This document shows positions 1,911 to 46,318 of a DNA stretch of 64,000 bases, in pieces (position 1 is the first letter of the stretch; every line of letters starts with the position of its first letter). Location of the stretch: positions 155,880-219,879 of the IMG/VR virus record IMGVR_UViG_3300032287_003113. One strand, given 5' to 3'. The notes beneath the pieces are model-generated. The model made no database searches and was not told the DNA's origin. It saw only the letters and a list, made by a program, of their open reading frames with translations. The translations under genes and the position numbers were made by a program.

Positions 1911-2788
1911 CAAGATTCTTTGCCTTCGGGTGCTCCTTTACTAACTCTAAAAATCCTACTTGGGCTGACATAGTGGCGCACGAGTACAACCATTACCAAA
2001 ACTGGGGACAGGCTGGTGCAGGTAATAGTTTTATATTCTACAGTCTAATGGAATGTAACAAGCGTAATCAGATTACTCCGGACGATGTAGTAATGATCAT
2101 GTGGAGCAGCATTGGTAGAGAAGATCGTTATGTTGGAGGAGAATGGTTGACTCCTGGTAGTATATACAATCAACAAGATTATGATGAGAACTTTGTAAAG
2201 AAGTTTACAGATCCAACAGGATACTTGTTACGAGATGCAGCACACTTGGCTGGTGCTAAAGCCATATTAGATAATATTGGGTGTCGGTATTATTTTTTTA
2301 GTATTGTTCCGTTTAATGTTCCAGACGATAACGTTTTTAAAATCTTTAGCATAGATAATAAAATATTAAATGTTTATGCTGAAGAATTTCGATCTGTGCG
2401 TCCCAGTGTATACGAAGTTGTCTTTGATCACGACTGGTACAGCCGGGCCGGCATTAAACAAGAAGACAAGCTCAAAGAAGAATACGAAATTAAACGTGGT
2501 AATGATTGGCCCACATGGGATAAGTTTATAATACAAGACTTCGGCGGTGTACCCAAAGATATTAAAGATGAAATAAACAACCAACACGAGTTTACCAACA
2601 GATATTTGCGTAGGTATGACACACATCCAACTCCAGCAGAATATTTAGAATATATCACACGAGTAGCACCAGACATAGAAGTATCCTCTGCCACACAAGA
2701 TTGGGTAGCAACAGTGACTGATAGATTAATCAAACACCAAGACTTAACCAAACTTTGGAAACCTAATAAAAAGCCTGCGAGATTCTAA
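1907..2788 (+). CDS. SGNH/GDSL-like hydrolase or acyltransferase
   Basis: N-terminal FGCSFT, G.AGAGNSFI block, C-terminal DTHP. Confidence 0.5.
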   Translation: MTRFFAFGCSFTNSKNPTWADIVAHEYNHYQNWGQAGAGNSFIFYSLMECNKRNQITPDDVVMIMWSSIGREDRYVGGEWLTPGSIYNQQDYDENFVKKFTDPTGYLLRDAAHLAGAKAILDNIGCRYYFFSIVPFNVPDDNVFKIFSIDNKILNVYAEEFRSVRPSVYEVVFDHDWYSRAGIKQEDKLKEEYEIKRGNDWPTWDKFIIQDFGGVPKDIKDEINNQHEFTNRYLRRYDTHPTPAEYLEYITRVAPDIEVSSATQDWVATVTDRLIKHQDLTKLWKPNKKPARF

Positions 2789-4170
2789 TGACCAAATCAA
2801 CATTTATGACAGCCGCAGAAAAGATGAAGGAACTATTGGGCCCGAGTCTTTGCCTGGCCAAATGGAAACAGGTTAGCCTGCATCTAGCTACTGGTATGAC
2901 CAACAGTTGTTACCATCCACCCTTACATGAAATAGATCCTATAGCATTAAAAGACAATCCCGGCGCACTACATAATACAGCACACAAAAAAGATCAACGT
3001 GTGATCATGCTCAAGAACGAACGCCCTACGGAATGTAATTATTGCTGGACACAAGAGGACATGGGCAATCTCAGTGATCGTCATTACAGATCAGGAGAAC
3101 CCTGGGCCGCCGACGACTACAATGCAATTAAAGCCAGCACAGGTACGGAAGATTGGATACCCAGTTATGTTGAAGTTAATTTTAATCACGTGTGTAATCT
3201 CAAGTGTAGCTATTGTAGTCCGCAGTTCTCTAGTACCTGGATGCAAGAAACTGACTATTATGGTGCCTATCCCACAAGCACTCCGCATAACGATCCTGCT
3301 CACTTCGCTGGTCGTCGCAGGCCTATACCGGTCAGCTACGATAATCCATATGTGGATGCATTCTGGGAATGGTGGCCTGAGCTGTATCCGCACCTGAAAC
3401 ATTTCCGTATGACCGGTGGCGAGCCGCTAATGGACAAGAATACTTATAAGGTATTTGATTATGTGTTGGCACTACCAAATCCAGAACTACACTTGGACGT
3501 GACCAGCAACTTTAGTGTTGACGATCGTTTATTTGACAAGTATCTGGGTTATGTCAAACAGTTATGTAACACACAGATAGAACACTTTATGCAGTACGTG
3601 AGTTTGGATAGTGGTAAACCCAGGCATGCAGAATACATTAGACACGGATTAAATTTTGCCAGAATGACTGATAATGTAAATCGTTTCTTAACAGGCGTTC
3701 CCTACCGTAATAGTCTAACATTTATCATTACCATGAACAATCTAAGTGTGTTGGGCCTACAGCGACAACTGGAATGGATACTTGATCTCCGAAGCACACA
3801 TAGTAAAACCTATCAACGTGTTTGGTTTGATACTCCCCTGCTACGTACACCCACTTGGCAAAGCGTACAAATACTGCCCGAAGTCTACGTTGGTGTGTTA
3901 GAACGTGTGGCCGACTGGATGGAACTACAGTTAGAAACAGCAGATAGACCATTTCAGGGATTCAAAGACTACGAAGTACAGCGTATGCGCCGTGATATAG
4001 ATTGGATGAAAGCAGGTCGCAATTTGGATCCAGAATATGTTAAACTGCAACGTGCAGATTTTTATCGTTTCTTTAACGAGCACGACAAACGACGCAAAAC
4101 TGACTTTTTAAAAACTTTTCCAGAAATGACAGAATTTTGGAACGAATGTAAGTACCATGCCCAGAATTAA
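2788..4170 (+). CDS. Radical SAM protein with N-terminal twitch-like domain
   Basis: N-term CLAKW..SCYH..CNYCW; core CNLKCSYC-SPQFSSTW; TGGEP. Confidence 0.85.
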   Translation: MTKSTFMTAAEKMKELLGPSLCLAKWKQVSLHLATGMTNSCYHPPLHEIDPIALKDNPGALHNTAHKKDQRVIMLKNERPTECNYCWTQEDMGNLSDRHYRSGEPWAADDYNAIKASTGTEDWIPSYVEVNFNHVCNLKCSYCSPQFSSTWMQETDYYGAYPTSTPHNDPAHFAGRRRPIPVSYDNPYVDAFWEWWPELYPHLKHFRMTGGEPLMDKNTYKVFDYVLALPNPELHLDVTSNFSVDDRLFDKYLGYVKQLCNTQIEHFMQYVSLDSGKPRHAEYIRHGLNFARMTDNVNRFLTGVPYRNSLTFIITMNNLSVLGLQRQLEWILDLRSTHSKTYQRVWFDTPLLRTPTWQSVQILPEVYVGVLERVADWMELQLETADRPFQGFKDYEVQRMRRDIDWMKAGRNLDPEYVKLQRADFYRFFNEHDKRRKTDFLKTFPEMTEFWNECKYHAQN

Positions 4171-35550: not shown

Positions 35551-36240
35551 TAGCGTTTGGACATAATTTTGGTATAGGAATTCGGCCCAGGCGGTATGGG
35601 CATCTGGACCAAAATGATATGATCCAGGACGAACCGTTTCGAATCCCCGTTGCTTTAACCAATTGTAGTAAGTATATTCTGGACTGTATGGATGTATGTA
35701 ACTGTTGCCCCATTCAAATTTTAAAGTTTTGGTAAATGGTTCAAATGTGTTAAAAAATATGTGTGGTATTTTGTTCTGGTCAAGATATCTATGCAGTTGG
35801 TGTATTTTTTCGTGTGCGTTTCTAACAGCATGATCGTAGTTGATGTTTAAAATGTAACCGCGGTATTGATCTTTGATTTCTGTAGGCCAATCTTCACCAA
35901 TGCCACCGGCATTGACTTGCCAATACTGTTCAGTGCCTTCGTGCCACCACTCTTCTCGTTCCCATGTTGACCACCCAATGATGACCAACTCGGGTTTTAC
36001 AATGTCAAGGGCCTTGTAAGTGGTACGAATGATTCTGTCGTTGCTACTGGCTGACTCTGCATCACATTGTAGTATGGCACCCAGCATGTTGGCCAACTCA
36101 CAGCCGTAGCTGACACGTAGATTATCTGGATGCGGTTCACGTGCCATGTTCCAATATAGGCTATCGTCTTGGGCAAACGAATATGTGTTTACTGCTTCGG
36201 CACCAGCACTATGGCTGTCACCATTTACATACAAGATCAC
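35539..36240 (-). CDS. SGNH-like protein
   Basis: NGDSHSAG, SASSNDRI, C-terminal YHFGPDAH. Confidence 0.5.
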   Translation of the reverse strand: MILYVNGDSHSAGAEAVNTYSFAQDDSLYWNMAREPHPDNLRVSYGCELANMLGAILQCDAESASSNDRIIRTTYKALDIVKPELVIIGWSTWEREEWWHEGTEQYWQVNAGGIGEDWPTEIKDQYRGYILNINYDHAVRNAHEKIHQLHRYLDQNKIPHIFFNTFEPFTKTLKFEWGNSYIHPYSPEYTYYNWLKQRGFETVRPGSYHFGPDAHTAWAEFLYQNYVQTLLTT

Positions 36241-36623
36241 GATACTTCAGTACGCCCGTCACCAATATCTCTACGTTCAATGTTGCGTGGACGTGCATCT
36301 ATTGGCTGATTGGCTTCCCATTGTTCAAAGTTTTCTGCCACTACATTTTTACACACATCAGCAAACCAACGGTCTACCATGTCTGCATCTGTATCTGCAG
36401 GTTTGTGTTGATATCCAGCACGTACCAGATTGGCAATAAACTTGTCATTCCAATCCAGTTCAAATGCACCGTTGCCAATGTTGTCTGGATCTAAATCTAC
36501 ACTAAGAATCGCCACATAAGGTTCGCCCTTTTCTGTGGCCAAATCCTTGGCAGATTTTTTTCGAGTCTTGGGTGCTTCTGGTTTTGTTTCGGGTTTCTTT
36601 TTAAAGCGATCAAATATTCCCAT
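36237..36623 (-). CDS. Hypothetical protein
   Basis: AAGGA SD, 128 aa. Confidence 0.7.
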   Translation of the reverse strand: MGIFDRFKKKPETKPEAPKTRKKSAKDLATEKGEPYVAILSVDLDPDNIGNGAFELDWNDKFIANLVRAGYQHKPADTDADMVDRWFADVCKNVVAENFEQWEANQPIDARPRNIERRDIGDGRTEVS

Positions 36624-37572
36624 TTTTATTCCTTATGTTCTTAATGTAAAAACTTGCTACAAAAAATATTACAAATGATGCCAGTGTTATCACAGTTGGT
36701 GTCAGCATATTTAGATTTTTACTCATGAAGTAAAAATAGTTTACAGCATTCATGGCCAGTACTGTGTACAACATGGTTTCTTTACGTACCCATCCCAACA
36801 GTATGTTACCAAATGGAGCAAAAAACAACACCACCGGGGCAGCCGCCAGCCACATCAAATAAACATCCGGGTGTACAGCATCCAAAAACAAACCACGATA
36901 GGCAATGCCAAACACAGTGATCACAGCCATGAGCACAATGCTGATGTCTGTGCTGATCTTTTCCTTCATGCCGTAGTAGCAGGTCAACGCAATGTAAATC
37001 AACATGTCACTGCCTGTGCCGAACATGGCAGAGGCACAACCACCTATGAATGAAAATATTGTAAAAATAACAAATTGGGAACCTTTGAGTTCGACATCGT
37101 CCACGGTGCCACCACCACGGCTGATCAAGTAAGCCACAATAAAGGCCAGGGCCATACTCACAAACAACATCTGTATGGTTTTGAAAGCAAAGGCACCTGC
37201 TATAGTGGTCATAAGCACAAAACCAATCATGTTTACAGCCGCATAGAATGGTATGTGTCTAAATGTCCGTAGGTCATGTGCTTTGCGTGTCAAGATCCAT
37301 ATGGCGGCTGATACCATACCAATGCTTTGTATGGCTAGACTAAAGTCTCTTGCCGCAGGTGGGGTGATATTAAAGTACAGGCTCAGAATGGGAAATGCCA
37401 CAGCACCGCCACCCTCGGGAGTAAAGCCGGCTATGGCTGAACCAAATATCATCATAAACGCATACAACCAATGTGTTTCGTACAAGGCAAAACCCGGTCC
37501 GGTCAAGATCAGATATAGCCAAGTGGTCAATACTGCCACTGCCCACACGGGCCAAATCATCATTTTATTCAT
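36610..37572 (-). CDS. TauE/SafE-family (sulfite exporter-like) membrane protein
   Basis: About 8-9 hydrophobic segments; AGF.P.GGGAVAFP and repeated SAMFGTG motifs. Confidence 0.65.
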   Translation of the reverse strand: MNKMMIWPVWAVAVLTTWLYLILTGPGFALYETHWLYAFMMIFGSAIAGFTPEGGGAVAFPILSLYFNITPPAARDFSLAIQSIGMVSAAIWILTRKAHDLRTFRHIPFYAAVNMIGFVLMTTIAGAFAFKTIQMLFVSMALAFIVAYLISRGGGTVDDVELKGSQFVIFTIFSFIGGCASAMFGTGSDMLIYIALTCYYGMKEKISTDISIVLMAVITVFGIAYRGLFLDAVHPDVYLMWLAAAPVVLFFAPFGNILLGWVRKETMLYTVLAMNAVNYFYFMSKNLNMLTPTVITLASFVIFFVASFYIKNIRNKNGNI

Positions 37573-38069
37573 TTTGCATCCTCTTCTGTTACTTCTACCC
37601 AGGTGTAATCACCCAACCATTTGACCTGGCAGATGTATTCATACTCAGATGGACCACCTGTGGTCCAATCTGCGGGTCCGTTGTGTGTGAGTCGTGTGCC
37701 GCCGCGGCGGTGATCACGAACCAACCAATATTTTTGTCCATGGTAGATTTGGAACTCGTAGCGAGCAGCATGTACCATGTCGGTTATATCTAATCGACGT
37801 TTTAGTTCTGCTGCTTGGCGTTGTAATACTTCTACCAGTTCCATGATCCTGTTGTACTCCTGTTGCCCGTGCATGCGAGCCACATTGACCATGATGTCTT
37901 TTTGTTTCTCTACCGGTATAAGATCAAAAGCCGGTCCTCCCACCTCGGTGGGGTAGGGTGTCACATTCTTGTTGAAGAACTCAACTACAACATTACCAGC
38001 CGTGATGTCAAAACTTGTTCTGCCGTCGGCTGCATTGGATTTTTTTTCAGTCACTGTCGAAGTTGCCAA
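37569..38069 (-). CDS. Hypothetical protein
   Basis: 166-aa ORF, ATGA-coupled. Confidence 0.65.
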   Translation of the reverse strand: MATSTVTEKKSNAADGRTSFDITAGNVVVEFFNKNVTPYPTEVGGPAFDLIPVEKQKDIMVNVARMHGQQEYNRIMELVEVLQRQAAELKRRLDITDMVHAARYEFQIYHGQKYWLVRDHRRGGTRLTHNGPADWTTGGPSEYEYICQVKWLGDYTWVEVTEEDAK

Positions 38070-38275
38070 ATTAGGTGTTCCTGGGGAGCATGATATCTGT
38101 ATTCAAACACAGGTTCACCGGGGCCGACCCAGACTGCTGTGCCACGATATGCATGTTGCAACCAGATTTGACGGTTAGTGAGTTCACATCGTTTCGGCCA
38201 CCAGACAAATATGTAATCCCAGTCGGCTCGTGCATGAAACTGATCATAGTGGTCCATGCCCGGTATGGGAGCCAT
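38051..38275 (-). CDS. Hypothetical protein
   Basis: Start moved to ATG 38275 right after the queE stop. Confidence 0.55.
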   Translation of the reverse strand: MAPIPGMDHYDQFHARADWDYIFVWWPKRCELTNRQIWLQHAYRGTAVWVGPGEPVFEYRYHAPQEHLIWQLRQ

Positions 38276-38276
38276 A

Positions 38277-39137
38277 TTATTTGCCCCAGCCGTTGCCCCA
38301 AAGATCCACATGCAAACGTGGGCTGTAGTTAAATCCACGTTCACAACAGATATTGGCGATGTTTAGTTTGTTGCTTTCGTATGGGTCAACTACGCCACCT
38401 TGTGGCATTAGATATACCACACCTTTGAAACCGTCATGTCTAAATGCATCCACAGCACGTATGGCTTCTGTAACGTGATCTTCAGTTTCAACCACAAACT
38501 TGAGATAAGTGTGTCCGTAAGTTTGATAGATATTGACAATCTTGGGTTTGATAGCATCATCCCACGACTCGCCTGACGCACTTAGTTTGGCACTGACACT
38601 GAATGTGACTTCACGTCCGGCTTTGTCACTGGCCCAGTCAATCAAGTAATCGCGGAAGTCTTCGTGTAGTTCTTGAGTACCGTTGGTTTCAAATGTGATA
38701 TTCTTCAAGTCTGCCATGCGGTGATGACTCAACAGTTCTGCATAAGCACGTTGCCAACCTAGCAAAGGTTCACCGCCTGTAATAACCAAGTGAACATCAT
38801 TGCCATTGTTTTGCATCCACATGTTATTAGGTGTCAGCGCCAACATCTTTTCCACAAGTTCTTCTGTGGTCAGTGTGGGACTCAGGTGTTTGTAGGCTGG
38901 ATGCCACGATGCATAACTGTCACATCCTGTTTCTACCAATGGAAGATCGTTGAATGTTTTGTACAGTTCTACCTTTTTGGCCACGTCATCTGCACCTGTT
39001 GATTTTTCGCCAGGCTTGCAACCAAAACCTGAACAGGTAAAGTTACATCCGTATGTTCTTAAGAATACGCTAGGTACTCCAACAAAGCGACCTTCGCCTT
39101 GTAAGCTATAAAATATTTCGCTGACTTTAATCTTCAT
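38277..39137 (-). CDS. queE: 7-carboxy-7-deazaguanine synthase (QueE-type radical SAM)
   Basis: SEIFYSLQGEG...VFLRTYGCNFTC, third Cys after a 36-aa insert (GCDS), VITGGEP, FETNGT, SPRLH; clustered with queD/folE. Confidence 0.85.
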   Translation of the reverse strand: MKIKVSEIFYSLQGEGRFVGVPSVFLRTYGCNFTCSGFGCKPGEKSTGADDVAKKVELYKTFNDLPLVETGCDSYASWHPAYKHLSPTLTTEELVEKMLALTPNNMWMQNNGNDVHLVITGGEPLLGWQRAYAELLSHHRMADLKNITFETNGTQELHEDFRDYLIDWASDKAGREVTFSVSAKLSASGESWDDAIKPKIVNIYQTYGHTYLKFVVETEDHVTEAIRAVDAFRHDGFKGVVYLMPQGGVVDPYESNKLNIANICCERGFNYSPRLHVDLWGNGWGK

Positions 39138-39402
39138 ATATTGTTGACCATTGTGTTAATTTTTGACTCTTTCTCACTTGTGCCGCATGTAATTCTGCTT
39201 CTGTAAAAATATTGTGTGCCTTGAGTAATTCTACTAACAATGTAACATCGCCTAGTTCTTGTACCAAATGTTCACGCTGGGTACCACCATCCTTGTAGCT
39301 ATTGTCAATACCAAAACGGCGAATCTTGCTGATAGCAACAATAACTTCAGCACACTCCTCTTGCAGTATGTCTAAGATTTCGTTAACCTTCGTAGATTGC
39401 AC
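39127..39402 (-). CDS. MazG-like nucleotide pyrophosphohydrolase
   Basis: LQEECAEVI...ELGDV; GTG start 39402 with GGAG SD. Confidence 0.7.
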   Translation of the reverse strand: MQSTKVNEILDILQEECAEVIVAISKIRRFGIDNSYKDGGTQREHLVQELGDVTLLVELLKAHNIFTEAELHAAQVRKSQKLTQWSTIYED

Positions 39403-39832
39403 TATTGGCTCCGTGTTCGGCACACTCAACTCTAACACAATAACAACGATTATTAGTTTTTTCTCGAATCAATTGATCTGCAAAATTAAAAGCGTGTTCA
39501 GCAAACTTTTCTGCACCTACTCCATCAAACATTCGGATCTCTACTAGGTCTAATGCTTGTAATTCTTCGAACTTGGCCAAGTGTGGATCTTGTCGATCCA
39601 GGGCCAACTTGTGATCAAAGTGATCTTCTAGCCAGGCTTTTAGTTCTTTAAGTCCTCCAAAGTCCACTGCCCAGTTCTTGTTGTCTAATTGGTCACAACC
39701 AAATGTAAATGTGAACGCTAGGCTGTAACCATGTAGCAGATGACAGTGACTGTGATCAGCATTGGGCTGTCTAAATACAGCACTCAATCCAATGTTGTGT
39801 CCGTAATGTTTTGTTGAGTAATACTTTGCCAT
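39383..39832 (-). CDS. queD: 6-carboxy-5,6,7,8-tetrahydropterin synthase
   Basis: HCHLLHGY, DFGGLK, FDH, terminal E; next to queE. Confidence 0.85.
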   Translation of the reverse strand: MAKYYSTKHYGHNIGLSAVFRQPNADHSHCHLLHGYSLAFTFTFGCDQLDNKNWAVDFGGLKELKAWLEDHFDHKLALDRQDPHLAKFEELQALDLVEIRMFDGVGAEKFAEHAFNFADQLIREKTNNRCYCVRVECAEHGANSAIYEG

Positions 39833-39840
39833 TGATTTCT

Positions 39841-39901
39841 CCTATGTTAATTATAGCATAGGCGGCAGAATTTATCAAGCGGGAATGACGCCAAGACCGC
39901 T
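39841..39901 (-). ncRNA. Candidate riboswitch (preQ1-I-like H-type pseudoknot plus SD-sequestering hairpin) in the queD leader
   Basis: P1 AGCGG/CCGCU, loop UCUUGGCGUCAUUC, tail UGAUAAAUUCUGCCGCC, hairpin CCUAUG/CAUAGG over AGGAG. Confidence 0.45.
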
Positions 39902-39917
39902 GTTTTGGGGATATAAC

Positions 39918-39923
39918 TATTTA
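39918..39923 (-). promoter_or_regulatory. Late-type promoter motif TAAATA for the queD leader
   Basis: ATAAATA overlapping the upstream stop, 86 nt before the queD ATG. Confidence 0.5.
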
Positions 39924-40466
39924 TCTCCACCATTCTTCCCAAGGAAAAACACACCATATGGGTTCTTCCAGTTTGTTTATTGACATGCCTGTATAGTCTA
40001 CATCTTTAAAGTCACTGGCCTCGTTGTTGATCAACACAGCAAAACGAACATTGTTGCCCCATACTGTCTTCCAACGCTCGTGGTCTGGCAAGCAACCGCT
40101 TGTCCAATCTTCGCGAATCCAATTTAGGGTAGCACCTGTGTCATTGATATCATCCACAACCAGAATGTTTTTGGCGTTGATACTGTAATCAAAGTCGGCT
40201 AACAACCGTTCTTCTTTGGGCACATATCCAAATGCTTCTTCGGCCATCCACAAGTTGCTTTCTGGTCCATGATCACTGTCACGTAAACTTACTTTCAGCG
40301 TTTCCATTGGAACTTCTAAATAATGACTCAGCATGGCAGCTGGTACTAGGCCGCCACGAGTAAGTCCCACAATGTAGTCAGGCTTCCATCCATCTGCATT
40401 CATGGCACGAATGATATCGTGTACCCAAGCTCGAACTGTTGAATCTTTGTAATATACTTTGTTCAT
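39921..40466 (-). CDS. Type I phosphoribosyltransferase (xanthine/guanine PRT-like)
   Basis: IVGLTRGGLVPA, ILVVDDINDTGAT PRPP loop, FPWE. Confidence 0.85.
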   Translation of the reverse strand: MNKVYYKDSTVRAWVHDIIRAMNADGWKPDYIVGLTRGGLVPAAMLSHYLEVPMETLKVSLRDSDHGPESNLWMAEEAFGYVPKEERLLADFDYSINAKNILVVDDINDTGATLNWIREDWTSGCLPDHERWKTVWGNNVRFAVLINNEASDFKDVDYTGMSINKLEEPIWCVFPWEEWWR

Positions 40467-40467
40467 T

Positions 40468-40638
40468 TTATCTTCTCGTGTTAATTCTTATACATTCGGC
40501 TAATTCTCGATCTGAATGCGATTTTGTAATACAGTTTCTAGCAGTGGCATCAGCCAGCGGATCGTGAGTTTGATAATATACTGCCATGGCAAGTATGATA
40601 GCAAGTAGAATTGCAATAACGATGTCTCTCAATTTCAT
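40468..40638 (-). CDS. Small membrane-anchored protein MKLRDIVIAILL...INTRR (56 aa; not in ORF track)
   Basis: AAGGA SD, N-terminal transmembrane segment, fills the gap. Confidence 0.6.
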   Translation of the reverse strand: MKLRDIVIAILLAIILAMAVYYQTHDPLADATARNCITKSHSDRELAECIRINTRR

Positions 40639-40648
40639 TTGAATATCC

Positions 40649-40876
40649 TTATTTTTCTAAATTACGTATACGCAAGCTAAGATCACGACCATCTGTGACC
40701 TGTCGATTTTCAAGTTGTGTTACCTTGCGTTGCAATCTAGAAATTCTAATGTGTGCATATACCAGCACAGCAACCACAAGAGTAAATGTCAGTCCCCAAC
40801 CGGCAACAATGCCGATCATCCAAGACCATAGGTCGGATATTTCTGTTACAACAGCCTGTAGACTTTGTGTAATCAT
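40649..40876 (-). CDS. Small membrane protein with coiled-coil tail
   Basis: Hydrophobic segment followed by heptad-like C-terminus. Confidence 0.6.
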   Translation of the reverse strand: MITQSLQAVVTEISDLWSWMIGIVAGWGLTFTLVVAVLVYAHIRISRLQRKVTQLENRQVTDGRDLSLRIRNLEK

Positions 40877-41298
40877 GCAAATGCTTCCTCTTCTAAATAG
40901 CGTTTTAATTCTTTGTCTGTGGGTTCTACTGTGTAATTGTTCTTGAAGAAGATTTCGTAGCTGTCCGAACCGTATTTTCCAATGCCATACAGTTTGTCAG
41001 CTTCATTGCCATCCCATTCCATGAAATCCAGACTCATCTGCACCAGTCGTTCATAACGACGATTCACCATGCCCAGACTCCAGATCACATCACGCACCTC
41101 GTCCGGAGTGGCCTGCAAGAATGCATAAGCACTACGCCATTTATTCCAAAATACAGGAGCCACGGTCTTTACGGGTTTACGGCCAGTTTGGTTCAACATT
41201 ATGACCGCAACCATGTGTTGCCAGGCCGCATCGACACCCTCCAAGCCATCGGGCAACTGCTGTTGCACCATGAGATCATCGCGGAGTGGCTGTATCAT
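40873..41298 (-). CDS. HhH-GPD DNA glycosylase, MBD4 catalytic-domain-like
   Basis: WQHMVAVIMLNQT, LGMVNRR, LYGIGKYGSDSYEIF. Confidence 0.7.
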   Translation of the reverse strand: MIQPLRDDLMVQQQLPDGLEGVDAAWQHMVAVIMLNQTGRKPVKTVAPVFWNKWRSAYAFLQATPDEVRDVIWSLGMVNRRYERLVQMSLDFMEWDGNEADKLYGIGKYGSDSYEIFFKNNYTVEPTDKELKRYLEEEAFA

Positions 41299-42131
41299 CT
41301 TGGTGCAAACTCTTGTTGCAGTTTGATATTGTCCATGAACTCTTTCTTGGTGCCAGGATCATCTTTGAACGCACCTTTCAGCACCGTGGTCTGAGTCAAA
41401 CTTGAATGTGCCATGATACCACGATTCTCACAGCAACCATGTGTGGCCTGTATGTACACACCAATATTTTCGCTGTCGGTAGCACGACTTATTTCTCTCG
41501 CGATGTCGTTGCATAGTTCTTCTTGTAGAGTACCGCGACGAGCACACCACTGAGCAATCCTAGTGTACTTAGATAAGCCAATAAGTTTTTGGGCAGCAAT
41601 GATACCAATGTAAGCAACGCCAGATACAGGCTGATGATGGTGACTGCACATACTACGCAATTCGCTACGCACAACAAGCATGCCTTCATATCTATCCTCG
41701 CTATCGTTAGGGAAAGCAGTGGCATCAGGTCTGGGTTCATACCTACCTGCCATGATTTCATTAAAATACATCTTGGCCAAGCGTCGTGCTGTGCCACGAC
41801 TGTTGGGATCTGTCGCACGATCAATCAACAGGGTGTCTAAAACTCGTTCAAAAGCTTCTGTAGCTTCATCGATTAGTCGTTCTTTGTCGCCTTCGTGCAA
41901 GTAATCGCTGATGTTGTCACCGGCCCAGAAACGTTTCTTGTTACGCTTCATGTTGAACCGAATAGCATCGGCTAGATACTTGCCTTCTTCGTAACCTTTA
42001 TCGCTCATGTGCATTACAGCATCTTCGTATCCGGGATGATACGGTGCTTCATTTACGTATTGTGTAGCTTTGATTGCATCAAATAGTAGATCTTTATCTT
42101 TATTTTTATCTTTATTTTTATTTTTGGACAT
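41295..42131 (-). CDS. folE: GTP cyclohydrolase I
   Basis: TARRLAKMY, SMCSHHHQP, GLSKYTR, RGTLQEEL, ATHGCCENRG. Confidence 0.95.
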   Translation of the reverse strand: MSKNKNKDKNKDKDLLFDAIKATQYVNEAPYHPGYEDAVMHMSDKGYEEGKYLADAIRFNMKRNKKRFWAGDNISDYLHEGDKERLIDEATEAFERVLDTLLIDRATDPNSRGTARRLAKMYFNEIMAGRYEPRPDATAFPNDSEDRYEGMLVVRSELRSMCSHHHQPVSGVAYIGIIAAQKLIGLSKYTRIAQWCARRGTLQEELCNDIAREISRATDSENIGVYIQATHGCCENRGIMAHSSLTQTTVLKGAFKDDPGTKKEFMDNIKLQQEFAPR

Positions 42132-42177
42132 GTATTCTCCGAGTTAGTGTCGTGGATGACTTTGTATTATTGTATGA

Positions 42178-42183
42178 TATTTA
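42178..42183 (-). promoter_or_regulatory. Late-type promoter motif TAAATA
   Basis: Overlaps the upstream stop, about 47 nt before the folE ATG. Confidence 0.45.
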
Positions 42184-42762
42184 GATTGCAAAGTCAATGG
42201 TTCTCAAGTCTGAATATTGGATATATTTAGGTTTTTCGTCCACTAATGGTAATTTTTGTGATCCCAGTTCGCATACTTCTAACGTGGGACAATAGTGATA
42301 TCCTTGTTCAAATACTTTTTGTTCGGTCCAGGGCAATATGGATAAATCTCTACCATCACTACGCATACGACTCAGTGTTTGGTAATCTTGTTTGTTGTCT
42401 AACAAGATAGCACCTGCTCTACCTAACTGTAAGGGTTTGCCGTTACCGAAACTTAAACATTGTTTATGGCCTGCACGGTACATTGCTCGTTCAAGTCTGC
42501 GAGCACTATCCCAGATATTGGTATGCCCAAATTGATATTCGCCTTGCCACGCCTGGTCTTTTAATTCGTAATGTATACCCAATTGACGAATCATTTGCGG
42601 AACACTAAGATAGGTATATGCTGTAAACTCTGTGTAAGTGACTCGGTCTAACCTAAAACACAATTCCATTGCGTGTGTGCAACTGTCGGTGACAACCACA
42701 TAAGGGGCACCGGTATACTCTGCCAGTGCGTGTTCAAAGTCAAACAGTCTTTTAAAACTCAT
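42181..42762 (-). CDS. Short DegT-like PLP-dependent aminotransferase
   Basis: FEHALAEYTG..VTDSCTHAM, WDSA, CLSFGNGKPL.LG.AGAIL; only 193 aa. Confidence 0.65.
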   Translation of the reverse strand: MSFKRLFDFEHALAEYTGAPYVVVTDSCTHAMELCFRLDRVTYTEFTAYTYLSVPQMIRQLGIHYELKDQAWQGEYQFGHTNIWDSARRLERAMYRAGHKQCLSFGNGKPLQLGRAGAILLDNKQDYQTLSRMRSDGRDLSILPWTEQKVFEQGYHYCPTLEVCELGSQKLPLVDEKPKYIQYSDLRTIDFAI

Positions 42763-42790
42763 ATATTCAAATTGCCTTTAGTGGAACACT

Positions 42791-42819
42791 ATTATAATAT
42801 AAATACCATATCAAATCAA
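42791..42819 (-). promoter_or_regulatory. Sigma70 promoter, leftward half of a divergent pair
   Basis: TTGATT-17-TATAAT. Confidence 0.6.
42798..42805 (+). promoter_or_regulatory. T4-type late promoter TATAAATA, rightward half of a divergent pair
   Basis: Exact TATAAATA 30 nt before ATG 42835. Confidence 0.6.
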
Positions 42820-42834
42820 ATTTAATTTAATCAA

Positions 42835-43920
42835 ATGAAACGTGCTGTTATCTGTGTTGCCAATCCTTGGGAATATATACCGCTATACGATAAAAATTAT
42901 AGCATTATGGTATTGAATCCCTCGGCACCTGCTGATCGAAATCAATACTTGTTGAACAATTCAGACTGGAGCCTATTGGTCACGGCCGACAATGTACAAG
43001 AAAGAGACGGCGCCGACTATCCCGGAGAAAAAGTTTATTGGTATACATCGGGCACCACCGGCGACAGTAAATTTTACAGTTTTACCGAACAACAAGTCGA
43101 TTATGTGTGTCGTCAAATAATCAAATCCTACGATCTTACTGCCAATGATCGATATGTTGGTGTAATGAGTCTATGGCATGCACACGGACAAATGATGTAT
43201 TGGATGAGCCGCATGATCGGCATGGAAACAACATTTTTGCCCATTGGACGATTGCAAGAAGTTTCCAAACACAGTCCCACATTCATCACCGGTATTCCAG
43301 ACATATTAAAAGCCTTGATGAAGCAACAGTTTGATAGTTTACGATTTGTTCGTAGTGCCAGTTCTGCTTTGCCTCCACAACTGTATTCTGCTATGAAAGA
43401 ACGTTTTGCTGTACCTATCGTGGAAAGTTTTGGTATGACAGAATCGTGTAGTCACTGTCTGACCAATCCCTTGGAAGGTGAACAACGCATAGGCACAGTG
43501 GGTTTACCGGATGGAGTAGAAGCACGTATTGAGCAAAATAAACTACTGATTAGAGGGCCGGCTGTGGCCGATTCGGATTGGCTCGACACCGGCGATTTGG
43601 CCGAGCAAGATGAAGCAGGGTACTTTCGAATTCTAGGACGTAGTGTGGATCGTATCAATGTGCGTGGTTACAAATTGGATCCCTTGAGCCTGGAAAACAA
43701 ACTATATGCGGCCTTTCCTGACCTTAAAGATCTAGCAATATTTGGTACCGACTCTGTAAAATGCATATACAATGGACCGTACGATAAAACGCAAATCAAG
43801 GCAGTATTGGTATCTATGGGACAATCGTGTTATCCAACCATACTTGAAGAAGTTGATTCAGTACCTAAAAATGCCGCGGGCAAGGTGTCAAGGACCATGC
43901 TCAATGACCTATTCGCTTAG
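42835..43920 (+). CDS. AMP-forming acyl-CoA synthetase / adenylation (ANL) enzyme
   Basis: YTSGTTGDSK, ESFGMTE, GTVG, TGDL, GRSVDRINVRGYK, PKNAAGK. Confidence 0.85.
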   Translation: MKRAVICVANPWEYIPLYDKNYSIMVLNPSAPADRNQYLLNNSDWSLLVTADNVQERDGADYPGEKVYWYTSGTTGDSKFYSFTEQQVDYVCRQIIKSYDLTANDRYVGVMSLWHAHGQMMYWMSRMIGMETTFLPIGRLQEVSKHSPTFITGIPDILKALMKQQFDSLRFVRSASSALPPQLYSAMKERFAVPIVESFGMTESCSHCLTNPLEGEQRIGTVGLPDGVEARIEQNKLLIRGPAVADSDWLDTGDLAEQDEAGYFRILGRSVDRINVRGYKLDPLSLENKLYAAFPDLKDLAIFGTDSVKCIYNGPYDKTQIKAVLVSMGQSCYPTILEEVDSVPKNAAGKVSRTMLNDLFA

Positions 43921-44271
43921 GTGATCTTTTTTAATCTCACGTACTGCACACTCTAGTCGTTCAGCAATAGCGTTTTTAATGGCAATACGTTTGTTGTTGT
44001 GATCTCTAATGGCAATGGCACGTCGACCAATTTCTTCTAGCCCTAGTTCTTGTTCACGCCCAGTTTTAAGCAAGGACTCTAGTTCCCATATCTCGTTGTG
44101 TATGCCCACAAGATTCATATATAAATCTTCAATTTTTTCTATGTCGTGTGCTATCGCTTGATTCATGTACCAAGTGAGTTCTTCAGCATTGGCTCCTCCG
44201 GTGCGTTTAAACTTAACGTCGGCGATGGCCAGGCGATCAAATAATTCAATAACAGGAAATGTAGGAGTCAT
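43909..44271 (-). CDS. Hypothetical helical protein
   Basis: ATGA-coupled to the upstream radical SAM gene. Confidence 0.65.
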   Translation of the reverse strand: MTPTFPVIELFDRLAIADVKFKRTGGANAEELTWYMNQAIAHDIEKIEDLYMNLVGIHNEIWELESLLKTGREQELGLEEIGRRAIAIRDHNNKRIAIKNAIAERLECAVREIKKDHLSE

Positions 44272-45296
44272 AGGTATAAGGTCTCTATTTTTTTGGGGTT
44301 ATCTAAAATGTTTTGTATCTGTATATTGCTTATGTTAGGACGACATGGAGCACAAAACTCCACACGAGTTCGATTGTATATTTCGTAATGACGAGCATTC
44401 AACCAACTATCACGGAAGTCTCCTGAGTCCCAATTGGCCAATTCAAACTGTGGATTACCCTTGCCTTCACAACAGATGTATATTTTACCATCGGCACAGA
44501 ATACAGGAAAGTGGAACATCTGGTGACACTTCTTGTAGTTACGTGGCAGAGTTTTGTTTTGATTGGCCCAGTATGGTAACCTGTACAACTGACTGTACTT
44601 TTCTAGTCTAGCAATGGTCTCTGGGGTAATTGGGTATGCTTGATTGTCAATGATAACAGGACGGAAGTAAATCATACGACCACCCAACTTGGCTACCAAG
44701 CGAAACAGATCATTCATTGCTTCTTCGGTGTCGTTCAATGGGTTTATCAATGCTTTAAAGTCAACATTGACCCCGGCTTGGATCAGGCCACGAGCATTGT
44801 CACATACCTTGGTAAACAAACTACGAGCAGTTAGGCTACGACGTATTTCTTCATACAAACTTTCTGTGCCGGCATCAATGTCAATACCAATCCAGGCCAT
44901 CTTGCGTAGTTTATCCACGTGAACAGTATCCAGCAGGGTGTCCAGGTTACTGCCGTTTGTGGTCAAACTGGTCAGGAATCCAAGGTCCAAGGTATGTTCA
45001 ATGACCTTCTCGTAACTGACCAATACAGTGGGTTCTCCACCGCCGGGATAGGTAATAGTATGAGTTGTGCCGTAACTGCGGGGAGTGTGTGCTCGCCACG
45101 TGGCCAACTTGTCTAGTAATGCAATGTATTCTGTGTATTTCTTTTGTACAGGCTTTTCTGCACGGAAGTCGGCAGAATTGCAGTAGTAACAGTCTTGATT
45201 ACACACATTGGTCAGATCTATGTCTACCTGAGCAGGCAAGATCTTCATGGTGTCTTGATTTCTCATCCAATGGACAAGTTCTGCGTATTGATACAT
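44268..45296 (-). CDS. Radical SAM protein with C-terminal SPASM/twitch
   Basis: CNQDCYYC, GGGEP, TTNG; C-terminal KCH...ICCE...CAPC. Confidence 0.85.
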   Translation of the reverse strand: MYQYAELVHWMRNQDTMKILPAQVDIDLTNVCNQDCYYCNSADFRAEKPVQKKYTEYIALLDKLATWRAHTPRSYGTTHTITYPGGGEPTVLVSYEKVIEHTLDLGFLTSLTTNGSNLDTLLDTVHVDKLRKMAWIGIDIDAGTESLYEEIRRSLTARSLFTKVCDNARGLIQAGVNVDFKALINPLNDTEEAMNDLFRLVAKLGGRMIYFRPVIIDNQAYPITPETIARLEKYSQLYRLPYWANQNKTLPRNYKKCHQMFHFPVFCADGKIYICCEGKGNPQFELANWDSGDFRDSWLNARHYEIYNRTRVEFCAPCRPNISNIQIQNILDNPKKIETLYL

Positions 45297-45322
45297 TATG
45301 GGCCCGGGGAATTAGATCCAAG

Positions 45323-46318
45323 TTACGGATAGGTAAGCGATCGTAGATACCACTTATAAGCTGAGTCTATAATAGTACTTATGTCGCTGTATTCGGCAGT
45401 CCAATTTAACCATTCGTGTGCTCGGTCTACCTGTGCCACCAACTCTGCTGGATCTCCTAGTCTAGGAGCAGATACAACAGTACGGAAATCGGTGTCGTAG
45501 TGTTGTTTGACATAGTTGACAATTTCTTGATTGCTGATACCACCACCTGTGCCAAGATTGATCTGCTGTGCACCAACCCATCCATGAGCTTCGCCGGCGC
45601 GATCAGCGGCCATCACATGTGCCTGTGCTAGATCCCATACGTGTATGTAGTCTCTGACGCAAGTACCATCACGTGTTTTATAATCTGTGCCGTTTAATCC
45701 AAATTCTTCTTTACGCAACATAGATTCTAACACTCGTGCCACAATATGTGTGGCATTGGGCTCTTGGCCAAGGTCGTAGTTGAAAGGTTCAGCACCGGCC
45801 GCATTGAAAAATCTAAAACATACGCTTGGGATAGCATGAGCCAAGTAATAGTCTTTTAATATGCGTTCACAAGTGGCTTTGGTATTGCCATACGGACTGA
45901 TTGGATCGACACGATGACCTTCAGGAATAGGCAAACGTTCAGGCTCGCCGTACACACTGGCACTTGAACTAAACAAGATCAACGGACGTTTGGGCAAAGT
46001 TTTTACCACGTCCAAGAACTTTACAAATTTTACCACATTGTTGTCCCAGTACTCGCCGGGATTTGTCATGCTAGGGCCAACAAGACTGGTACCAGCACAA
46101 TGTACAACAACGTCAGGGTTGGCATGTATTAACACACTCAACGCACCATCGCTGACAAAGTCTCCGATAAAATACCCGTCAATGTCTCGGAGTGTGTGTT
46201 CACGTCGGACTTGATCCACTATAGTAACGTGGTAGCCGTGTTGTTTGAATGCCCGTGCCACGTGACTACCAATGTAGCCACACCCACCGGTTACAACAAC
46301 TCGTTTCGTGCTAGTCAT
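45323..46318 (-). CDS. galE: UDP-glucose 4-epimerase-like SDR
   Basis: TGGCGYIGSH, SSSASVYG, YGNTK, RFFNAAGA, DGTCVRDYIHV. Confidence 0.85.
   Translation of the reverse strand: MTSTKRVVVTGGCGYIGSHVARAFKQHGYHVTIVDQVRREHTLRDIDGYFIGDFVSDGALSVLIHANPDVVVHCAGTSLVGPSMTNPGEYWDNNVVKFVKFLDVVKTLPKRPLILFSSSASVYGEPERLPIPEGHRVDPISPYGNTKATCERILKDYYLAHAIPSVCFRFFNAAGAEPFNYDLGQEPNATHIVARVLESMLRKEEFGLNGTDYKTRDGTCVRDYIHVWDLAQAHVMAADRAGEAHGWVGAQQINLGTGGGISNQEIVNYVKQHYDTDFRTVVSAPRLGDPAELVAQVDRAHEWLNWTAEYSDISTIIDSAYKWYLRSLTYP

Follow-up and report, generated by a model that had tools for sequence, protein, structure and literature searches.

A conserved pseudoknot in the leader of a phage queD gene resembles an undescribed riboswitch that may turn translation on

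The closest described system to the element reported here is the preQ1-I riboswitch (Rfam RF00522; types I-III), a very small H-type pseudoknot with a P1 helix of 5-6 bp and a P2 helix formed between the P1 loop and the 3' tail. Its described features (PMC10622847, PMC11625349) include a conserved U or UU directly after the P1 5' strand (U6, which contacts the ligand), an A-rich L3 whose last adenine abuts the P2 3' strand and reads the ligand edge (A29/A30), and a short P2 of 3-4 bp that includes or abuts the SD, so that the ligand turns expression OFF. A conserved specificity cytosine also lies immediately 5' of the P1 3' strand, preceded by U in type I or by A in types II and III (PMC11625349). 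The preQ1-II and preQ1-III riboswitches are instead HLout pseudoknots of about 80-100 nt with four or more paired regions. Translational ON riboswitches such as the Vibrio add adenine riboswitch use an anti-RBS strand, and guanidine-III is a small H-type pseudoknot ON switch. Leader pseudoknots may also be bound by proteins, as in the E. coli rpsO/S15 pseudoknot (PMC3985624); the phage T4 gene 32 leader pseudoknot works in this way as well. Riboswitches are rare in phages, and those reported there belong to bacterial classes, for example glutamine (PMC9004378).

We examined the leader of a phage queD gene within a window of 64 kb, by which we mean the whole stretch of DNA that was analysed. 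A preliminary description had proposed that this leader folds into a preQ1-I-like pseudoknot with two possible P2 registers (GGCG/CGCC or UGGCG/UGCCG), that a hairpin masking the SD shares CC with P2 and could make an ON switch, and that, because the phage apparently lacks preQ1 synthesis, the ligand might be CDG, DG or guanine. The observation itself is correct: the minus strand of 39833-39923 reads exactly as had been stated, with an intergenic leader of 88 nt (39833-39920) preceded by the TAA stop (39921-39923) of the upstream phosphoribosyltransferase ORF. Its interpretation is supported in part, as set out below. The genes around the leader run on the minus strand, with folE and an HhH-GPD gene lying upstream, and the features of the locus are as follows.

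39921-40466, minus strand: upstream phosphoribosyltransferase gene (Pfam PF00156, PHROG 8995); no terminator-like or promoter-like site lies between its stop and P1, and read-through from it is the only visible source of aptamer-containing transcripts in the window
39897-39901, minus strand: P1 5' strand (AGCGG), pairing with 39878-39882
39893-39896, minus strand: L1 (UCUU), with a variable first nucleotide, then invariant C and U; relatives carry 0-7 further nucleotides here, and all length variation of the motif lies in this loop
39886-39892, minus strand: P2 5' strand (GGCG-U-CA), with invariant unpaired U39888
39883-39885, minus strand: L2 (UUC), in which C39883 is invariant and sits directly 5' of the P1 3' strand, the position of the preQ1-I specificity cytosine
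39878-39882, minus strand: P1 3' strand (CCGCU)
39868-39877, minus strand: L3 tail (UGAUAAAUUC), an A-rich part followed by invariant U and C; in this clade it doubles as a -35-like hexamer (TTGATA, 39873-39878)
39861-39867, minus strand: P2 3' strand (UG-C-CGCC), with invariant unpaired C39865; also the putative anti-RBS strand
39841-39862, minus strand: predicted SD-masking hairpin, CCUAUG (39857-39862), loop CUAUAAUUAA (39847-39856) and CAUAGG (39841-39846); the loop holds TGn-TATAAT (-10 at 39850-39855)
39850-39878, minus strand: embedded sigma-70-like promoter (TTGATA, 17 nt, TATAAT, with TG upstream of the -10), predicted start about 39843-39844, downstream of the aptamer
39827-39843, minus strand: ribosome-binding region, SD AGGAG 39839-39843 (GGAG 39839-39842), AUG 39830-39832 and second codon GCA 39827-39829; UGGCA 39827-39831 can pair with UGCCG 39863-39867
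39383-39832, minus strand: queD (6-carboxytetrahydropterin synthase / PTPS family; Pfam PF01242, E = 1.5e-14), the gene headed by the motif, its product 48% identical to QueD of Rhizobium phage RHEph04
38277-39438, minus strand: genes packed against queD and probably co-regulated with it, a MazG-like ORF (39127-39438, overlapping queD by up to 56 nt as the mechanically listed ORF) and a QueE-like radical SAM gene (38277-39137), with no terminator-like site between them

Taken alone, the sequence is unremarkable. The MFE of the leader is -18.2 kcal/mol against -16.7 +/- 2.9 for shuffles (z = -0.52), and is therefore no better than chance. Rfam gave no match at gathering score in the window or in 20 relatives, and none at E <= 10 in two leaders, although the same scan also missed the genuine type III preQ1-I element of E. 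coli K-12 yhhQ, so that its silence carries little weight for small variants. On the other hand, a pattern made of the motif's conserved letters matched the window once, against 0.00 expected in 100 shuffles.

To obtain relatives, we searched viral contigs with the QueD protein, which returned 80 loci with 85-100% identical QueD out of about 600 candidates. Several of these lie on contigs of 340-357 kb, including IMGVR_UViG_3300027759_004177, which is identical here. A scan of viral contigs with the motif pattern, which was saturated with true hits, gave 120 more. The stretch upstream of queD is conserved in nearly all of the protein-retrieved loci, and it varies in a compensatory manner. P1 appears as AGCGG/CCGCU, ACCGG/CCGGU, UGCGG/CCGCA, AGAGG/CCUCU, AGUGG/CCACU and AGUCG/CGACU, and the loop-tail helix as GGCG/CGCC, GGCAU/AUGCC, GACGC/GUGUC, AUGGC/GUCAU and AUGACAU/AUGUCAU.

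A first MAFFT alignment placed gaps inside P2 in inconsistent registers, and we therefore replaced it with a count made outwards from two invariant anchors, without any fitting, and with a trimmed alignment whose gaps all fall in L1. In the anchor count, the innermost P2 pair is A-U in 60 sequences and G-C in 6, the next is an invariant C-G, and then comes an invariant U.C mismatch followed by four to five pairs with several Watson-Crick types each; overall 87% are paired, against 23-50% in slid registers. The trimmed alignment held 63 distinct cores, of which 57 were retrieved through the QueD protein, and so were unbiased with respect to the RNA, and 6 came from the pattern scan of genomes described below. 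In this set 94.8% of cells pair, 9 of 11 pairs show double compensatory changes (four of 5 in P1 and five of 6 in P2), and the covariation score is 0.525, against 0.148 +/- 0.014 in shuffles (0 of 500 reach it) and 0.04-0.13 in slid registers. A second set of 85 distinct cores, in which the retrieval pattern fixes some invariant letters, gave 96.7% paired and 0.483 against 0.124; P1 cells pair in 98-99% of cases, and the two sets together hold 141 distinct cores. RNAalifold predicts P1 independently. These results demonstrate that the pseudoknot is real, and that covariation among homologous leaders, whose absence had been named beforehand as grounds for rejecting the idea, is present. Of the two P2 registers proposed, GGCG (39889-39892) with CGCC (39861-39864) is the one supported, and it extends through the U39888.C39865 mismatch to C39887-G39866 and A39886-U39867. 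The unpaired positions that do not vary in either alignment are the C and U of L1 after its variable first nucleotide, the U and C of the mismatch, the C directly 5' of the P1 3' strand, and an A, a U and a C at the end of L3.

The association of the motif with queD is specific. A covariance model built from the alignment finds one copy in the window at 52.7 bits (next best 9.3), and therefore no second copy there, as well as one full copy in 77 of the 80 protein-retrieved loci and one in each of 100 pattern-retrieved loci. Of the three remaining loci, which we numbered with an L prefix as retrieved, two are cut off within or before the motif (L003, L048) and one (L074) has none. The downstream gene is a QueD of one of three subfamilies (64, 26 and 19 of 114) that are only 34-40% identical to one another. 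In three loci a cupin-like or methyltransferase-like gene sits between the motif and queD, and in one locus QueD carries a 60-residue N-terminal extension; the leader and, in three of these four loci, the first two codons AUG GCA stay in place (AUGGCA stays with the leader even where the first gene differs in L068, L201 and L210). A pattern scan of 185,579 species genomes gave 29 hits, of which 21 fail the P1/P2 pairing test, about what chance gives. The 8 true hits lie on MAG contigs, and the downstream ORFs extracted for 6 of them are QueD homologs; nearby genes match PHROG phage protein families, which does not settle whether these contigs are phage or cellular. Searches of 50,697 GenBank phage records with the 1.2-kb region and with two leaders at E <= 10 found nothing beyond chance, and no cultured phage with the motif was found. 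The closest cultured-phage QueD genes are at most 54% identical, and the motif is absent from the 7 cultured-phage queD loci examined, where queD abuts the upstream gene.

It is conceivable that the pseudoknot is a translational operator, in which a phage or host protein rather than a small molecule binds the folded pseudoknot or the alternative fold and sets queD translation, since the invariant loop nucleotides and the mutually exclusive pairing with the start site fit such an operator too. We regard this as unlikely. A leader shared by three QueD subfamilies of such low identity, and retained when another gene is put first, argues against autoregulation by the encoded protein, and no candidate RNA-binding protein is linked to it in the loci. 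In addition, its small size, its junction-centred invariants and the cytosine next to P1 are typical of metabolite pockets.

The region downstream of the motif suggests how it may act on translation. In most of the 66 platforms folded, the minimum-energy fold pairs the P2 3' strand, or the nucleotides just after it, with the start-codon region, whereas in the L069, L075 and L079 leaders the L3/P2 junction CUCC pairs with the SD GGAG instead. In the window the pairing is UGCCG with UGGCA, and in other clades it is UGCCAUUG/CAAUGGCA, GUCAUUGUU/AACAAUGGC, GUCAUC/GAUGGC, GUCAUCUU/AAGAUGGC and GCCAUUAUUA/UAAUAAUGG. Of 101 leaders without the hairpin, 99 carry C[A/G]U at the end of P2, complementary to AUG, and the flanking pair covaries (C-G 56, U-A 25). 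The leader's own duplex energy is -8.4 kcal/mol, against -7.5 with other leaders' start regions and -6.5 with shuffled start regions (p = 2e-7 and 2e-18), and -5.2 for a control segment. In the window, P1 plus the closed platform scores about -14.8 kcal/mol and P1 plus P2, without tertiary or ligand energy, about -10; once P2 takes C39861 and C39862, the SD hairpin goes from -5.8 to +0.4 kcal/mol. The computed gain in RBS accessibility when the P2 3' strand is withdrawn is modest, however, with mean unpaired probability going from 0.43 to 0.53 and rising in 56 of 66 leaders, and the SD hairpin stem does not vary across the leaders of the window's clade that were read, so that covariation speaks neither for nor against it. 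The ON-switch idea of the preliminary description thus holds in silico and can be stated more fully, in that the P2 3' strand pairs not only with the first two G of the SD hairpin (G39841 and G39842) but also with the start-codon region.

The preliminary description had missed a promoter-like signal. The L3 tail and the hairpin loop together form the best sigma-70-like site of the 8 kb scanned (36000-44000), TTGATA, 17 nt, TGn-TATAAT, with 11 of 12 matches, in keeping with the near-consensus hexamers and 16-18 bp spacing of a sigma-70-type promoter. Across the relatives, 38 leaders have a strong sigma-70-like promoter just upstream of P1 and no embedded site, 52 have the embedded site (-35 in L3, -10 in the platform), 10 belong to the hairpin clade but fall below the promoter threshold, and 60 have neither. 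In the first group the -10 most often ends 7 nt before P1, so that the RNA would begin 1 nt before the aptamer, which is the classic riboswitch position. All 52 leaders with the embedded site are among the 62 of the CUAUG/CAUAG hairpin clade, which includes the window, and only one of them also has an upstream promoter (Fisher p = 8e-9), suggesting that in this clade the promoter has moved inside the leader. Transcripts from it would lack the aptamer and the 5' half of the hairpin, a real complication for this particular copy. Nevertheless, both aptamer helices still show compensatory changes within the clade; the aptamer is therefore still under selection as RNA, presumably on read-through transcripts. 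In one metatranscriptome, contigs cover queE and queD but not the upstream genes, which fits initiation near or inside the leader, and one relative's contig joins the leader to queD, but these assembled contigs are of low depth, do not exclude DNA carry-over and give no usable 5' ends. That the region is only a promoter, with incidental RNA folds, is very unlikely and already contradicted as a sole explanation: it cannot explain the compensatory changes, most of which lie upstream of the -35, nor the same motif in clades whose promoter lies upstream of P1 and whose platform has no -10-like loop. A promoter may coexist with the RNA element but does not replace it.

The 5' position in 38 leaders also raises the possibility that the element is structural and has no ligand, either protecting the mRNA end, tuning translation constitutively through a fixed complementarity to the start codon, or responding to temperature or Mg2+. 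5'-terminal structures stabilise mRNAs, and the two computed states differ by only a few kcal/mol. We consider this doubtful, because a stabiliser needs no invariant unpaired nucleotides, no invariant U.C mismatch and no conserved competition for the start codon, and in the window's clade the element is not at a 5' end. An intrinsic terminator was rejected for want of a U tract, and a frameshift or read-through signal because the element lies in a leader, often at the very 5' end.

We propose that the queD leader encodes a 43-nt H-type pseudoknot aptamer (39859-39901, minus strand) joined to an expression platform, together forming a translational ON switch that is most likely a riboswitch of an undescribed class with preQ1-I-like architecture; we put the probability of this reading at roughly 0.55. 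Comparison shows that P1 and P2 exist and are under selection, that a set of unpaired nucleotides is invariant, and that the element heads queD operons and nothing else, once per locus, whereas the switching, the binding of a ligand and the resulting change in expression are inferred from sequence and folding. The element has the general marks of a riboswitch in being a conserved aptamer with covariation and invariant unpaired nucleotides in the 5' leader of functionally related genes and, in silico only, in having an expression platform with a pairing mutually exclusive with the aptamer. In this view, without the trigger the P2 3' strand pairs with the start-codon region, stacked in the window on the CCUAUG/CAUAGG hairpin that covers the SD, and the start site is closed. 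A ligand would then stabilise the P1-P2 junction and capture the P2 3' strand, the outer helix and the two G-C pairs of the SD hairpin would be lost, and queD would be translated, with the closely packed mazG-like and queE genes probably following by coupling. ON control of a biosynthetic gene is less usual than feedback OFF. In the window's clade the embedded promoter would also give short, aptamer-less and therefore unregulated queD transcripts, and the switch would act on read-through transcripts from the phosphoribosyltransferase gene.

Although nothing in these data identifies the ligand, we can postulate certain candidates. The invariant cytosine beside P1 suggests a guanine-like Watson-Crick face, and it is conceivable that a pathway pterin (7,8-dihydroneopterin triphosphate, CPH4), a 7-deazaguanine (CDG, preQ0, preQ1) or guanine is recognized, although this is speculation. 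With ON logic, a substrate-side signal such as dihydroneopterin triphosphate is as plausible as a 7-deazaguanine. The pathway context is FolE, QueD and QueE with a phosphoribosyltransferase. No QueC or DpdA hit was found by tblastn in the window, a search that did not address QueF directly, and the suggestion that the phage lacks preQ1 synthesis therefore holds only for these 64 kb of a roughly 357-kb genome. Among 208 motif loci, which are short, QueC appears in 1 and DpdA in none. The cultured cyanophage BUCT-ZZ01 has the same gene set, and TubE of tubercidin synthesis joins CDG to PRPP (PMC6112128).

A more far-reaching reading, possible but tentative, is that this phage-borne class, of 38-49 nt, turns translation ON when it binds a pterin or 7-deazaguanine pathway intermediate, such as 7,8-dihydroneopterin triphosphate, CPH4 or CDG, and gates a FolE-QueD-QueE-phosphoribosyltransferase route that makes a 7-deazapurine nucleotide without QueC or DpdA. 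It would then be either a fourth solution to 7-deazaguanine or pterin sensing, or an evolutionary offshoot of preQ1-I with reversed logic. Literature searches on a queD motif, preQ1-IV, a preQ0, CDG or deazaguanine riboswitch, and phage structured RNAs found no description of the motif. If it is a riboswitch, it would be a class known only from phages, with at least 141 distinct representatives, and one of the smallest aptamers. Because it resembles preQ1-I in architecture but has different pocket-lining nucleotides and the opposite regulatory sign, it would be a natural experiment on how a minimal pseudoknot is re-tuned. The identity of its ligand would also show what these phages make with FolE, QueD, QueE and a phosphoribosyltransferase when QueC and DpdA are absent, which bears on how phage DNA or nucleotide pools become 7-deazapurine-modified. 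The nesting of a predicted promoter inside a putative riboswitch in one clade is an unusual arrangement and is of interest in its own right.

Compared with the protein-binding leader pseudoknots of phage T4 gene 32 and E. coli rpsO/S15, the element likewise lies in an mRNA leader near the 5' end and would set translation of the downstream gene through a pseudoknot/alternative-fold equilibrium, but those are autoregulated by the encoded nucleic-acid-binding protein, whereas here the encoded proteins are metabolic enzymes of three divergent subfamilies, with no binding protein in sight. As in translational ON riboswitches such as Vibrio add and guanidine-III, one strand can pair either inside the aptamer or with the ribosome-binding region, and aptamer formation would release the start site; the folds and conserved nucleotides are unrelated, and the competing partner here is mainly the AUG and second codon rather than the SD. 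With 38-49 nt, two helices, a transcript that in 38 leaders would start 1 nt before P1 and no Rfam match, the motif does not have the HLout architecture of preQ1-II or preQ1-III.

The parallel with preQ1-I drawn in the preliminary description holds for the H-type topology, for the 5-bp P1, which is capped by an invariant G-C pair, for the invariant cytosine directly 5' of the P1 3' strand (preceded mostly by U or A, and in some relatives by C), for the A-containing tail that crosses P1, and for the association with a gene of 7-deazaguanine synthesis. That the element is an ordinary preQ1-I member sensing preQ1 or preQ0, merely too divergent for the Rfam model, is nevertheless unlikely, and membership is not shown. 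L1 is N-C-U plus up to 7 further nucleotides, its first nucleotide being A, U or C where preQ1-I has the conserved U; the A-containing tract is separated from P2 by Y plus invariant U-C, in place of the ligand-contacting A; P2 has 7-8 bp with an invariant U.C mismatch, rather than 3-4 bp, and begins 23-43 nt before the AUG; the SD lies about 20-30 nt downstream, outside P2; and the inferred logic is ON, not OFF. The covariance model built here does not find the E. coli yhhQ element, and so far the motif is found only in uncultured phage contigs and MAG-binned contigs. Although we do not file it as a member, we describe the element as working like, and perhaps descended from, preQ1-I.

In the motif locus L068 (positions 2746-3450), QueD carries a 60-residue N-terminal extension, and the motif, the hairpin platform and the first codons AUG GCA sit in front of the extended ORF. 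In three other motif loci (L201, L210 and L218), the motif-proximal ORF is a cupin-like gene (113 aa) or a methyltransferase-like gene (240-243 aa) inserted between the motif and queD, and in two of the three the inserted gene also starts with AUG GCA. The leader and first codons appear to move as one module. L074 (queD at 3001) is the one close QueD relative (88% identical) with no motif upstream, only a plain SD.

True copies of the motif were also found in the scan of genome contigs, on contigs binned into bacterial MAGs of several phyla: the hits L084, L085, L088, L097 and L107 (Bacteroidota MAGs), L087 and L100 (Rickettsiales MAG), and L102 (Nitrospira MAG). Where checked, neighbouring genes matched phage protein families, suggesting, although not proving, that these are probably mis-binned phage contigs. 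The Rfam covariance-model scan was also applied to 351 nt containing the E. coli K-12 yhhQ leader (L231:6178-6215), and at E <= 10 it did not report the published type III preQ1-I riboswitch, which is visible in the sequence. Negative Rfam results for very small pseudoknot aptamers should be read with care.

The genes surrounding the leader in the window are as follows.

38277-42131, minus strand: the cluster, consisting of folE, an HhH-GPD-like gene, two small membrane ORFs, a phosphoribosyltransferase, queD, a MazG-like gene and a queE-like gene
39383-39832, minus strand: queD
39127-39438, minus strand: the MazG-like ORF
38277-39137, minus strand: the queE-like gene
42181-46318: the region next to the deazapurine genes
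44268-45296: within that region, a second radical-SAM protein
45323-46318: within that region, an NAD-dependent epimerase/dehydratase

As mechanically listed, the MazG-like ORF overlaps the end of queD by 56 nt, and queE overlaps the MazG-like ORF by 11 nt. The three genes are probably translationally coupled, so the leader may control all of them. In addition to the second radical-SAM protein and the epimerase/dehydratase, the adjacent region contains an AMP-binding enzyme on the plus strand, and a 193-aa ORF in which Pfam matches only residues 8-63 to the N-terminal part of the DegT/DnrJ aminotransferase profile, and which is possibly truncated. These genes may represent a sugar or side-chain modification module.

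No QueC or DpdA/TGT homolog was detectable in the 64 kb. A related arrangement is found in the cultured cyanophage Synechococcus phage BUCT-ZZ01 (L232; ON615601.1, 68014-73457), in which QueE, xanthine-guanine phosphoribosyltransferase, a hypothetical gene, QueD and GTP cyclohydrolase I form one tight block. The phage lacks QueC and has no leader before queD, and it could serve as a culturable model for the pathway, though not for the RNA. The gene set in the window resembles the tubercidin route, in which TubE joins CDG to PRPP, and points to a nucleotide-level 7-deazapurine pathway, inferred here from gene content, rather than to DpdA base exchange.
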